Positions 24,607 to 30,082 of a stretch of DNA of 33,732 nt are shown piece by piece; positions within the stretch are counted from its first letter, which is position 1, and the number at the start of each line of letters is the position of its first letter. The notes below the pieces were generated by a model, which saw only the letters and a program-made list of their open reading frames with translations, was not told the origin of the DNA and made no database searches. A program made the position numbers and the translations under genes. This DNA comes from Reticulomyxa filosa (Eukaryota > Protista > Foraminifera): positions 1 through 33,732 of the forward strand of contig ASPP01006696.1 in the NCBI GenBank assembly GCA_000512085.1, given 5' to 3'.

Positions 24607-26759
24607 TTAATCCCAGTATTGTATAGTGCCGTCCCACGAACATGTAGCGACTTTGCTTGTCATGACAGGATGCCAAATGCATCCCATGACAACCTTATGC
24701 GAGGCCTTCAAGGTTTCGTATACACGAGAGGTCTTCCAGTCCCAAAAGAACACTCGTCCCTGAGCGTCGCCACTCATTACAAAGCGCCCGTCCGGAGAAA
24801 CATCGATCTGACACGAGTATCCGGCGACCATGTGTCCACGGAAATGCTTTTTGCTGTTTGGAGAGAAGCGATTGGCGGCACCATAGACCACAATCTGATT
24901 GTCGAGAGACGTGCCCAGGAACCATTTTTTGTTGGGATGCAGGGTCAAAAAGGGAACCGAGTGCAAAGAGGGATCTGCAATGTGTTTGATAACCACAGGG
25001 ACACCGTAGTCCCAAATGAATATTTTCTTGTCGTCACTTGAAGTAACGAATCTGCGATTGTCATCAATGAACAATATTGCATTTACAGCCTGTAAATGTT
25101 CTTCATAGTTTTGGACAATTTTGTTGGCGCGAATGTCCCATTGAACTGCGATTTTGTTTTTTTGTCCACATAAGAACTCATTTTCATTTTCAGGATAGAG
25201 TTTGGCGTCGAATGGAATTTTACCACTGCTGCCACGCCATATGACTTTGCCAGTTTCTGTGTCCCATAGCTAATTATATATGTTTGTGTTGTTGTCTTAT
25301 TATTATTGTATGTATATGTATATGTATATGCATATATCGTAAAAGTAAAAAGCAACCCAACTTTGAGCCATCGGTCGAAAGAGGTAGTCAAAAACTTGGA
25401 ACCATCGTGATTGAAGCAAATATTCCGCACACCAGCAGTGTGTCCATTATAAGAACGCAAACATCTCCGATCGTTATGCACGTCCCAAAGCTTCACCGTG
25501 GTGTCGTTGGAACAAGATAACAACAAATGGCCTGTCTTTGGAAACCATTTGATCGAGTTGACTCCATCCTTGTGTCCCAGCCATGTGTGTATTTTCTTCT
25601 TTGGGATGTAGTATTTGCCCTCGCTGTTCGACCGTTTCTTTTTGTCGGGAGGACAGTACATGTATGTTCTTCCTTGATAATCGTGTTCATTTTCTCCAAA
25701 GAATTCTGTGCCTTCGATTGCCATTTGCTATTCCACATATATATATGCATATATAATATATATAATATATATAATATATATATAAACTTCTTCATATCGC
25801 TGTTTTCGTTTCAATTCTCTCTTCTGCTCTTCTTCAGCGTCTCCTTCCTCTTCATCGTCGCCCCGGTTTTGCGTGCCTTCCATCCCATCGTCATCCGCAT
25901 CCGCGGTTGTGTTATTGATGTCCGGATTCATTCGTCTCCGATTTCTTCGCTGTTCATTTTCGGGATGCTGTCTTTGCCAGTCTTCTTTTCGCTTTGTCAA
26001 CTCCTCCTCCCATTGCTTCTGCTCTTCGTCCGTCTTGATTTGGGGCGCCCACGGTCCCAAGTAACCTCCCACGTCTTCCGCGTCCCCTCGTCGCACCCGC
26101 TTTCGCGCCTTCTTTTTACGCTCTTTGTCCTCTTGTACCGACTGATTGAACACCGTCATTGATTGATTCTGGTGCAGCGCATCCTTATCTCCAATGTGCC
26201 GGCTGTTGTCCGACGGTGTCGTCACTCCCTTCGACGGATCGATAGCATATCTGTTCGTCCAATCCATTTTACAAAAAAACATTGATGTTCAACCATTGTT
26301 TTGTTGTTATTGTTGTTTTTTCGACTTTTTTTTTCTCCCCAAAAAAATTTGTCCAAATCAAATCCTCTCCCCCCTTTTTTTTTTTTTTTTTTTTGTTTAC
26401 CCCCGGTTTTGAAACGTGTAGTATTGCTCATTAAAGATGAAATCATCTATGTGGTCGACTTCAGCGTGTCCTGTCAACGTAGTCTTGGGGGGCTTGAAAG
26501 CTTCCTCACGGGTTGTGCCTTCGGGCAACGGCCCTTGCATTGGCGCAAACAATACATCCGCGGTCGGATTGTGTCGAATCTCTTTTGCGTCGATGCGATG
26601 GTATTTTTGAAGTGAGGTTGTCATCGTTGCGATATCCACGCTTGGAGCGACGTTCACTAACGTAGACAACGCTTGACTATTTGTATTCACTGATCTCGAC
26701 ATAGAGTCGTCATCCGTGGAATCCGAATCCCCACCATAAAACTTGACAATATCTTCCAT
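24607..26759 (-). CDS. CDC40: Pre-mRNA-processing factor 17 (WD40 second-step splicing factor)
   Basis: Four exons (26759-26401, 26250-25788, 25727-25362, 25270-24607). HNPTADVLFAPMQGP, TLTGHAE..IDDFIFNEQYYTFQNRGYAIDPS, GYLGPWA, DYQGRTYM, YIPKKKIHTWLGH, FRGHMVAGYSCQ, WHPVMTSKVATCSWDGTIQYWD. Confidence 0.96.
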
Positions 26760-27212
26760 TTTTTTCAGATATCAAATGCACCACAAAAAAAAAGGTTCAC
26801 GTTTCGATGGGATTATTTGGTTAGATTCCCCAAAACGTCTTGAAAAGTTCCGTTATCCAGTCGCAAGCTTCAGCAATGAAACCGGTCTTCCACCAACTAA
26901 ATTAAATAAAACCGTTTGTATGCTTAAATTTTTTTTTTTTCTTAAAATATTCGCAAAAGTGAGCAGTTATGTATTCGGTGTCAATCTCAAAAATCGGAGT
27001 CAAAATCTCTAAAACTGTGATAACAATTTTTTTACCACGCAATGTTGTCCATGGGATTCAAAGAAAAATAGTTTGCATTTCCTCAGAAGGCTGCAATTCC
27101 ATGACGAGTACAAGTACTTTGTTATAGTAGAAAAGAAAATGTATATAGCGCAAGAACCGCTTTTTTTTTTTGGGTTGAAGTATTTGTATGTTTTAGACTG
27201 TCTTTGATTGAA
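26760..27212. promoter_or_regulatory. Short divergent intergenic region, candidate bidirectional promoter (CDC40 / CAP-Gly-CDPK)
   Basis: Head-to-head start codons with 453 bp between them. No specific motif identified. Confidence 0.4.
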
Positions 27213-30082
27213 ATGGCGAAACATACACGTCCCTTCTCAGATGTACTCCACAAGACAGATGAAAGAGTTTGTGTAGGAGATATGGTGGAGATTGTGAACA
27301 GCAAATGCCGCACAGGCTGCGTGCAATATATAGGCCCTGATGAGAGTTTCACAAAAGTGTGGTATGGAATAGAATTGGACACTGCAGGCGGACCACATAA
27401 CGGAAGGCCAAGCGAAAGCGCACGACAGTATTTTAAGTGTAAGGCGAATCATGGAATATTTGTGGAGCGCAATCAAATAATCCAGGTGCTAAGGAAGAGT
27501 CCCACACCAGTGAGGATCAGCGTGAACGACCGAGTGTTTGTGAACGACCAAGTGTTAGTGAACAAGCGCGGCAAAGTGTTATTTGTGGGGCCAGTGGCAA
27601 AAACAGAGGGATTTTGGTATGGAATCGAATTGGATGAGAAGATCGGCCACCACAATGGAACGATAGGAGGAGTAGAATACTTTCGGTGTTCACTCTCCAA
27701 AGGTATCCACATGAGAAGTATGGCATTGACGTTGATCACATCGACGCGACCTATGACGGGCAAGAAGGTGAAGTCAGATCAAGGTTTATTGGCGCGATCG
27801 TCTGAAGGAGACCCGCGCAAGAAAGAAGTCTCGCAGAAGGATGAGGACAAGAGCAAAAGCAAAGATAAGGACAAGAGTAAGGACGAAGATAGTGAGTTGA
27901 AGCAAGACGAAGTGGACATGCTGCGCACAGATACCGACCGTCAGTTTAAGAGGCAAGACCCCAATAGTCAACATAAGCTACGACAGATCCTGGGAAATGT
28001 GTTACCGAAGAGACAAAACACGGTTGAAATATTGCCCGAAAATGATGCCGGACGGATGCGCAAATTTACTGACGATTATGCATGCAATTGGGAAACTGAT
28101 TTTTTGGGATGTGGAGAGTTTGGCAATTGCTACAAATGTCGAAGTAAAACCAAGTTCTTCCAAAACAAACATCGAATGTTCGCTGTTAAGAAGATCTCCA
28201 AGGCAAGATTCCGACAAGACAAAGTTGTTGTTGGAATGATGCAACACGAGTTGGAAATATTGCGAACATTGAAGAAAAAAACACGAAATAAAAAGATTGT
28301 TGGATATCGTAACATTATTAAAGTTTGTTGTTTTTTTTTTTCATTACAAGACTAAACACAGGAGAAGGAGGATCAATAACAAAAAAATAAAAAACAAAAC
28401 ATAAAAAAAACTCTCAATCAATTAATAACAAAAGTACGTTACTTTTTTTTGCTGTTTTGATAGACCAAACTTTATACGTATTCAATGTGGGTAGAGAGGG
28501 GAGGAGGAAACAACTTATGTTTATTGTTTGCTAATAGATATCACATAATGTATGTGTGTGTTACAGTTGTATGATGTGTACGAAGATCGGAATTATCTGT
28601 ATCTAGTAACGAATTATTGCGGTGGAGGGACACTAGACGATCATATGAGCAAAAAGCGCGACTTGCGTGAGATCGACGTCGCGCAAATAATGAAGCAGGT
28701 ATTGGAAGGCGTGCAATTTCTACACGGCAACTACATTGCACATTTGGATCTGAAGCCGAGCAACATAATGTTTGCTAACAAGAACAAGGACTCTCCTGTG
28801 CAATTGGTCGATTTCGGCGTATCCCACGGCGTGCCTCGACTGACAAAGCGCAAAGGACTGGTTGGCACGGTACACTTTATAGCGCCGGAGGTGATCAACG
28901 GACAGTACGATGCGGCCGCGGACATTTGGAGCTGTGGCATTATTTTGTATTTTATGTTGTTTGGATATCCGCCTTTTTTCGACGACAAAACAGCTCTCAA
29001 TCTCAGCAGCAACGAGCGCATATTTTCTAAGATCCTCGAAGGATTTCAGCCCATCCAGAAAGGAGGGCCTGGGGCCGTGGTTCCCCGCCAATCACGTGGT
29101 CTCGCAGGACGTGAAGGATCTGATCGCGCGGATGCTCAACAAACATGTAAAGGATCGCATCACCGTGCGCGAAGCGCTCGATCACGATTGGTTCAAATCG
29201 GCCAGCGACAAAACCTTGGATCATACCATTCACGACGCATTGACCAAGTTCAGCAATCAATGCAAGTTCCGCGTACTGATATCGCAGATTCTGGCCCACA
29301 AGCTACCCAATTCCGAATTCAAAAAGCTCGAGACGTGGTTCAAAAATGCCGACGAAAACAACGACAACAAATTATCCTTACTCGAGTTCAAAAAGGTAAT
29401 GCACAGCTACAAACTGGGCTACACCGAGGTCGAGCTTGAACGCATGTTCGAGGCTGTCGACTTGGATCATTCCAACGAAATCGATTTTCAGGAGCTGCTC
29501 ACTGCCTTTGCGTTTCAACGCATGATTGCCACCGACGAGCGATTGTACGAGACCTTTCGGGAGCTCGATAAAGACAATGACGGATTCATCACCAAGAAAG
29601 AGCTCCAAGAAAAAATCCTTGAATTGGAAAATGATGAAGCGAAGAATGAAAAAGCGCTCAAGTTACTCGGACTTGACGACTCCAATACATCCAAATCACG
29701 CAAGACTCCTCATTTGCAAGTCACCAGATTGGACACCGCCGTCGATTGGGCCGACATTGACTTGGACGGAAAAATTAACTATGAAGAATTTCTCGCTGCT
29801 TTGCATCCCGATTTCAGCGAACCCAATGTGCGCAGGCCTGACACTCCCTCCAAAAGTGCCACCGAGTCCGATTATTTGCATATCAATTGGATCTCTCACA
29901 GCAACGTCACTGAAATATCTCAAAAACGTCTACACGACAGCGAAACTGAAACGGAAGTCGAGACCGAAGTCGAAAGTGATGAGGAGATCGCTGTTGATGA
30001 GGAGGAAAGAAAGTCTGACGGAGAAATTGAAACCGCCTCTGAAAATGAAGATTTAGTGCCGGGGATGTTTTCTTTATTCTGA
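27213..30082 (+). CDS. Tandem CAP-Gly + calcium-dependent protein kinase (kinase + 4 EF-hands); one apparent frameshift
   Basis: Exon 27213-28322, intron 28323-28566, exon 28567-30082. CAP-Gly motifs WYGIELDTAGGPHNG..YFKCKANHGIFV and WYGIELDEKIGHHNGTIGGVEYFRC. Kinase motifs LGCGEFG, AVKKISK, HLDLKPSN, DFG, APE, DIWSCG. EF loops DENNDNKLSLLE, DLDHSNEIDFQE, DKDNDGFITKKE, DIDLDGKINYEE. Extra A at 29059-29061. Confidence 0.93.

Follow-up and report, generated by a model that had tools for sequence, protein, structure and literature searches.

The window, that is, the whole stretch of 33,732 nucleotides analyzed here, is contig ASPP01006696.1 of the foraminifer Reticulomyxa filosa (assembly GCA_000512085.1). 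At positions 27213–30082 of its plus strand lies a gene that encodes, in this order, two CAP-Gly domains, a low-complexity linker, a CAMK-type kinase, the junction of a calcium-dependent protein kinase (CDPK), four EF-hands and an acidic tail. The coding sequence is spread over three open frames of the plus strand (27204–28355, 28552–29439 and 28910–30082), and it runs from the ATG at 27213, the first in-frame ATG downstream of an in-frame stop codon (27102–27104), to a stop codon at 30080–30082. Searches, folds and codon counts were run per exon or per piece of this gene rather than on a joined spliced product. On balance, the interpretation favored is that of a single gene of a foraminiferal CDPK family, in which two CAP-Gly domains in tandem, with a disordered linker after them, stand in place of the short variable N-terminus and in which a frame break within the kinase is most likely a homopolymer error.

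Organization of the gene

Exon 1 (27213–28322) is one uninterrupted frame that leads from the start codon through both CAP-Gly domains and the linker into the kinase N-lobe and ends in GYRNIIK, as an earlier note on this DNA had stated when it placed the CAP-Gly pair and the N-lobe in one exon and frame. The first CAP-Gly domain (27267–27488), with the loop GPHNG, was recognized by Pfam, AlphaFold2 and Foldseek, and the second (27513–27734), with the loop GHHNG and the segment G-I-H-M-R, by the best Pfam stretch (residues 109–171), by sequence matches in the PDB and by alignment. The linker (27735–28076) is of low complexity, rich in Lys, Asp and Ser, and ends in the basic R-x-x-T motif KRQNTVEIL (28008–28034). 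The kinase N-lobe (28077–28322), identified with Pfam, presents the Gly-loop GCGEFG, the Lys of AVKK and the alpha-C Glu. A phase 0 intron with GT..AG ends (28323–28566) follows in the sequence, and it is found at the same position after GYRNIIK in two paralogues. Exon 2 opens with LYDVYED and begins with the kinase C-lobe (28567–29194), a match to Pfam Pkinase that has an HLD catalytic loop (28741–28749), DFG and APE, is broken by a change of frame and ends in DHDWF; comparison with paralogues located the break at one surplus base in the run aaagg (29059–29063). The C-lobe is followed by a CDPK-type junction, the putative autoinhibitory segment (29195–29323), with the motif FSNQCKFRVLISQ, and a paralogue aligns collinearly with solved CDPKs through this stretch. 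A calmodulin-like domain with four canonical EF-hand loops (29324–29815) was recognized by the EF-hand families of Pfam and by the loop pattern, and a C-terminal acidic tail (29816–30082) ends, before the stop codon, in GMFSLF, a form of the ending G[MV]F[SN][LM]F common to the three R. filosa paralogues.

One gene rather than two

When compared with Pfam, the frame 27204–28355 matched CAP_GLY in two stretches (E = 1.3e-33, 115.2 bits against a cut-off of 26.5), together with the first ~60 positions of Pkinase, the frame 28552–29439 matched Pkinase positions 60–210 (E = 6.2e-44) and the frame 28910–30082 matched the last Pkinase positions and EF-hand_1 (E = 7.4e-23), as well as EF-hand_5, EF-hand_6, EF-hand_7 and EF-hand_8. 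In GenBank this one gene is divided into RFI_08747 and RFI_08748 (27090–28355 and 28552–30082); exon 1 is 100% identical to the former, a 'hypothetical protein', and the 3' part is 100% identical to the latter, a 'calcium-dependent protein kinase'. The combined architecture is hidden there because the RFI_08747 model continues from exon 1 into the intron, and the RFI_08748 model starts within the kinase and omits 33 conserved kinase residues to get past the frame break.

Relatives of the gene were found both within R. filosa and beyond it. The paralogue on contig ASPP01004467.1 (L001) encodes two CAP-Gly domains, an N-lobe ending in GYRNIIK, a C-lobe, a junction, four EF-hands and an acidic tail, with an intron at the same position as in the window, a much longer low-complexity linker and no frame break; GenBank splits it likewise into two genes, of 643 and 495 residues. 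A third paralogue (L003, RFI_09602) has the same intron site, at which its GenBank model splices, and reads straight through the site of the break; it begins at a contig end, and its N-terminus is therefore unassembled. A word search with exon 1 matched only RFI_08747 itself. An exhaustive HMMER search with exon 1 against 1.84 billion representatives returned 2289 matches, the best 150 of which were screened for kinase and EF-hand parts, and three relevant relatives were found among these 150. The first (P0112), from a JGI environmental contig of 3108 nt (L002, positions 30–2975), is a single frame of 981 amino acids with CAP_GLY twice, Pkinase and EF-hands; the second (P0122), from NCBI assembly GCA_024449935.1, has CAP_GLY, cut at the 5' end, Pkinase and EF-hands; the third (P0047) comes from the transcriptome of the foraminifer Bolivina argentea and joins two CAP_GLY stretches to a kinase N-lobe on one mRNA-derived sequence, which is 3'-truncated. 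All members of the family have in common the HLD catalytic loop, the GxHxG CAP-Gly loop and the junction motif QCKFRVL, whereas ordinary CDPK-like matches carry HRD. Judged from these sequences, the design is kept both by the paralogues within R. filosa and by other foraminifera.

The CAP-Gly–CDPK architecture is real and belongs to a single gene. This follows from the Gly-loop, the catalytic Lys and the alpha-C Glu, which share a frame with both CAP-Gly domains, from L001, which repeats the order and the intron site without a frame break, from L003, which keeps the intron site and an unbroken frame, and from P0112, P0122 and P0047, in which CAP-Gly is also combined with kinase parts; the fusion that the earlier note described was borne out on these grounds. 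The contrary explanation, that the fusion is an artefact of neighboring CAP-Gly and CDPK genes, as in GenBank, or of a chimeric contig, could appeal to the two GenBank models and to the paralogue being called as two genes as well, but it is extremely improbable, since the kinase N-lobe lies in the CAP-Gly open frame and RFI_08748 by itself would be devoid of a Gly-loop and a catalytic Lys. Moreover, a separate paralogue, a transcript from Bolivina and an environmental contig with a single frame all repeat this order, and the intron site is kept in three paralogues.

Kinase, junction and EF-hands

The catalytic motifs of the window copy are complete (GxGxxG, the Lys of AVKK, the alpha-C Glu, H-L-D-L-K-P-S-N, DFG and APE), and the four 12-residue EF loops (29351–29386, 29459–29494, 29567–29602 and 29753–29788) are canonical, fitting the pattern D-x-[DNS]-x-[DNSG]-x6-[ED]. 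With the kinase-to-EF-hand part of a paralogue as query, the best solved relatives were apicomplexan CDPKs (E values from 3e-64 to 1e-52), and the match was collinear from the N-lobe through the junction to the EF-hands, with CaMKI, CaMKII and DAPK ranking behind. The junction segment of the window copy was found to be 65–69% identical to those of the paralogues. The junction and the four intact-looking EF-hands of the earlier note were thus recovered, by the collinear alignment of the paralogue with CDPKs and by the canonical loop pattern. The sequence presents a CAMK-group Ser/Thr kinase, a junction directly after the kinase and a calmodulin-like domain with four EF-hands, and by every sequence test the gene would be classed as a genuine CDPK.

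Because the catalytic motifs are complete, the EF loops canonical and the match to solved CDPKs collinear, the best-supported function would appear to be the CDPK mechanism, in which Ca2+-loaded EF-hands free the active site of the junction. As judged by homology with CDPKs of known structure, the junction, which we infer to act as an autoinhibitor, would block the kinase at low Ca2+, and the binding of Ca2+ to the four EF-hands would pull the junction away and turn the kinase on. The HLD loop is of the non-RD type and suggests that activation-loop phosphorylation would not be required.

The frame break

The frame shifts by +1 at 29059–29063, where the DNA reads cag-aaag-gag (29056–29065). Three paralogues read Q-K-E at this place, within an uninterrupted PIQKEGLG or PVQKEGLG, so that the run holds one base too many in the window. 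A mini-intron was ruled out, because only four bases separate the flanking conserved codons, and programmed frameshifting at these positions was considered very unlikely, as every paralogue reads straight through.

Codon comparisons were made among the three R. filosa paralogues, namely the window copy, L001 and L003. Synonymous sites were found to be saturated (pS 0.76–0.98) while pN was low (0.14–0.23), which indicates that the copies are old and constrained. Downstream of the break, the changes unique to one copy numbered 34 synonymous and 9 non-synonymous in the window copy, 42 and 9 in L001, and 31 and 25 in L003. These counts show purifying selection on the window copy in the part beyond the frame break as well, so that the break would be either an assembly error or a very recent event. 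The draft assembly of R. filosa is split into 50,809 scaffolds, its N50 being 3.6 kb (PMC13746701), and it is likely that the surplus base is an error of this fragmented assembly, most probably one of homopolymer length.

The alternative is a recently inactivated pseudogene, in which the shift of frame is genuine and the intact paralogues supply the function. The assembly as given does have one surplus base, and redundancy is plausible because at least two further paralogues exist. This explanation is nevertheless unlikely, given that the ~2.6 kb of coding sequence bears no further lesion, that 340 codons downstream of the break stay open, that the changes specific to the window copy after the break follow the same pattern as in an intact paralogue, and that the surplus base stands in a short homopolymer context of a very fragmented draft. 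The CAP-Gly–CDPK family and its intact paralogue stand whichever explanation of the break holds.

The CAP-Gly pair and its possible ligand

A model of the CAP-Gly pair was built by AlphaFold2 with 20 aligned tandem CAP-Gly sequences (pLDDT 90.7, pTM 0.84). When compared by Foldseek, each half of the model was superimposed on the CAP-Gly domains of p150Glued and CLIP-170, with target TM scores of 0.88–0.93, rmsd values of 1.1–1.5 Å and a probability of 1.00, and the PDB sequence matches of the second domain were CLIPR-59 and CLIP-170. The match to PF01302 exceeds the curated threshold, and the model confirms that the fold is that of CAP-Gly.

Microtubule tracking and the binding of EEY/F tails have been linked to two residues of the GKNDG loop, its Lys and its Asn (PMC9062740). 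Both residues are replaced in both domains of the window copy, in which GKNDG becomes GPHNG and GHHNG; these loops, like the HLD catalytic loop, were read in the sequence exactly as the earlier note had given them. The substitutions in the loops count against the interpretation favored here, and so do changes at further presumed residues of the groove and the possibility that the frame break in the window copy is genuine. In the numbering of p150Glued, what we take to be the equivalent of F52 is Lys and that of F88 is His in the second domain, and the presumed equivalent of R90 is Glu in the first. Nor does the protein resemble a plus-end tracking protein (+TIP) of the CLIP-170 type, as Pfam gave only CAP_GLY, Pkinase and EF-hand families, with no coiled coil and no zinc knuckles.

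Among the relatives, the paralogue has the loops GQHNG and GQHSG, while Lys or Arg is kept in the loops of Bolivina, P0112 and P0122 (GRHDG, GKHSG and GKHGG). In the ordinary CAP-Gly proteins matched, a His at the third loop position is frequent (GKHDG, GMHDG and GRHDG, in 44 of 298 loops). Kinase-linked second CAP-Gly domains in which the segment is present carry one His in G-x-H-x-G and another in G-[IVL]-H-x-R, with the exception of P0122 (G-I-C-C-R), whereas the second of these sites is a Phe in other CAP-Gly domains (G-x-F-x-R), so that the pair of His residues is specific to the family. The pair presumably lies at the ligand groove, the second His at the position taken for F88 of p150Glued.

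Because the GKNDG Lys and Asn are replaced in both domains, tethering of the kinase to microtubules can only be proposed. Binding of microtubules or EB tails by the CAP-Gly pair is plausible, although the motif evidence does not support it, and an altered ligand is a serious alternative. The pair would serve as a module for localization or partner recognition. Its likeliest ligand would be an acidic-aromatic C-terminal tail, belonging either to tubulin or to a microtubule-associated protein, and its specificity is presumably altered since the two loop residues are replaced.

A more radical departure is that the pair binds neither microtubules nor the tails of tubulin or EB, and serves instead for another partner or for intramolecular regulation, leaving the Ca2+ kinase untethered. 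The loops of the window copy and of its paralogue, and the His that replaces the Phe of G-x-F-x-R in the second domain of kinase-linked members other than P0122, are in keeping with such a role, and the PDB neighbors include CAP-Gly domains with non-tubulin ligands, such as CYLD bound to ubiquitin. The CAP-Gly fold is nevertheless retained, as are most core aromatic residues (W-Y-G and Y-F-x-C), Lys or Arg remains in the loops of other family members, and His at the third position is common in ordinary CAP-Gly proteins; absence of microtubule-related binding is therefore a possible but rather unlikely explanation.

Linker motif and C-terminal tail

The linker between the CAP-Gly pair and the kinase varies in length and sequence among the paralogues. 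The basic R-x-x-T motif, situated ~15 residues before the kinase, is present in every member of the family; the forms KRQNTVEIL, KRGGTIAVL and TRGKTIKIL come from the paralogues of R. filosa, from Bolivina and from P0122, the sites being those of the window given above, exon 1 of L001, residues 394–402 of P0047 and residues 136–144 of P0122. The motif fits the site of a basophilic kinase and could be an autophosphorylation or a pseudosubstrate site.

At the other end of the protein, the acidic run of three R. filosa paralogues (window positions 30035–30079 and the C-termini of P0003 and P0024) leads into G[MV]F[SN][LM]F, while the last residues of P0112 are SSSEDY. These tails recall the acidic-aromatic C-termini that are read by CAP-Gly domains. 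The C-terminus of CLIP-170 is itself a ligand of the CAP-Gly domains of the same protein. An intramolecular arrangement can be envisaged for the present family as well, in which the conserved tail would be the ligand of its own CAP-Gly pair and the kinase would be a switch with two inputs, Ca2+ opening the junction and tubulin or EB tails opening the CAP-Gly–tail clamp by competition. The R-x-x-T motif before the kinase could then be an autophosphorylation site. If such a clamp existed, kinase activity would be confined to places at which calcium and microtubule ends meet, such as those in reticulopodia. The chance that this combined arrangement is correct is small; a complex prediction for the CAP-Gly pair and its own 49-residue tail gave a score of 0.00, which is no evidence either way.

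Relation to known systems

Literature searches yielded no paper and no characterized protein with the CAP-Gly–CDPK architecture, and a preprint on the Filoreta cytoskeleton is silent on such an architecture. The earlier note's remark that no characterized protein of this architecture was known holds to that extent; the general idea of a kinase with CAP-Gly is already on record. A CAMK-group kinase with cap-gly, one per species, was listed for trypanosomatids (Parsons et al. 2005, PMC1266030). In choanoflagellates a C-terminal CAP-Gly occurs in the RTKC family (PMC10263333), so that the fusion of CAP-Gly with a kinase is in itself not new. The proposal of a candidate Ca2+-activated kinase fused to a CAP-Gly pair must be read in the same light, its architecture, its single gene and its conservation being upheld and the general idea having precedents. 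The trypanosomatid protein, compared by its kinome-table entry alone, is similar in being a CAMK-group kinase with CAP-Gly (PMC1266030). The RTKC protein of Monosiga brevicollis is similar in having a kinase with CAP-Gly and a proposed contact with the cytoskeleton, but it is a tyrosine kinase and transmembrane receptor with a single C-terminal CAP-Gly and no Ca2+ module (PMC10263333).

The apicomplexan and plant CDPKs (TgCDPK1, CpCDPK1, CDPK3) share with the R. filosa protein the succession of CAMK-type kinase, autoinhibitory junction and four EF-hands. Their N-terminus, however, is short, variable and often acylated and their catalytic loop is HRD, whereas the R. filosa protein, from a rhizarian lineage, has a tandem CAP-Gly cassette with a long linker and no Gly2, an HLD loop and a long acidic C-terminal tail. 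Other N-terminal targeting domains occur in apicomplexan CDPKs, namely CBM20 in TgCDPK2 and PH in CDPK7, and CDPKs with a dedicated targeting domain now extend to Rhizaria. The CAP-Gly domains of CLIP-170 and p150Glued have the same fold and 33–43% identity, and CLIP-170 also has two CAP-Gly domains at its N-terminus; the R. filosa protein differs in having a kinase attached and in being without the GKNDG Lys and Asn, a coiled coil and a zinc knuckle.

The microtubule dynamics and transport of foraminiferal reticulopodia are among the fastest known, and to our knowledge their control by Ca2+ is poorly understood. A conserved kinase that carries a Ca2+ switch together with a module of the type that reads tubulin tails would be a clonable candidate for a link between Ca2+ and the cytoskeleton in foraminifera, although its connection with reticulopodial dynamics is speculation. 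Additionally, two GenBank gene pairs into which the CAP-Gly–CDPK protein had been split are corrected.

Distribution and neighboring sequences

Three further surveys added little on distribution. A family-profile word search was swamped by low-complexity words of the linker, gave only its own first sequence, P0112, and one plant kinase, and is uninformative on distribution. Similarly, a metagenome scan that used generic kinase patterns returned 80 ordinary CAMK-like loci of ~30% identity with no CAP-Gly nearby in a six-frame check and is equally uninformative. In the ESM Atlas the nearest large clusters were ordinary CDPKs, and the families displayed for them did not include CAP_GLY, which is weak evidence.

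The N-terminal tandem CAP-Gly cassette of the kinase also opens many further proteins among the exon 1 matches. Proteins with multiple CAP-Gly domains are numerous in Foraminifera, as in Elphidium margaritaceum (P0026 and P0170) and in RFI_31450 (P0022), a protein of 2604 amino acids with 15 matched stretches. The closest relative met that is free of CAP-Gly comes from a JGI metagenome (P0171/P0004) and is a CDPK of ordinary length (536 amino acids) with an HCD loop, a similar junction and the same ending, DGKINYEEFL-ALHPDFNE, behind the fourth EF-hand. The catalytic loop of P0112 reads H-L-D-L-N-P-N-N, with Asn in place of the catalytic-loop Lys, and its kinase activity may be altered or lost. 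Upstream of the gene in the window, a divergent neighbor on the minus strand (25083–26759) encodes WD40 repeats (E = 8.5e-18) and is seemingly unrelated.

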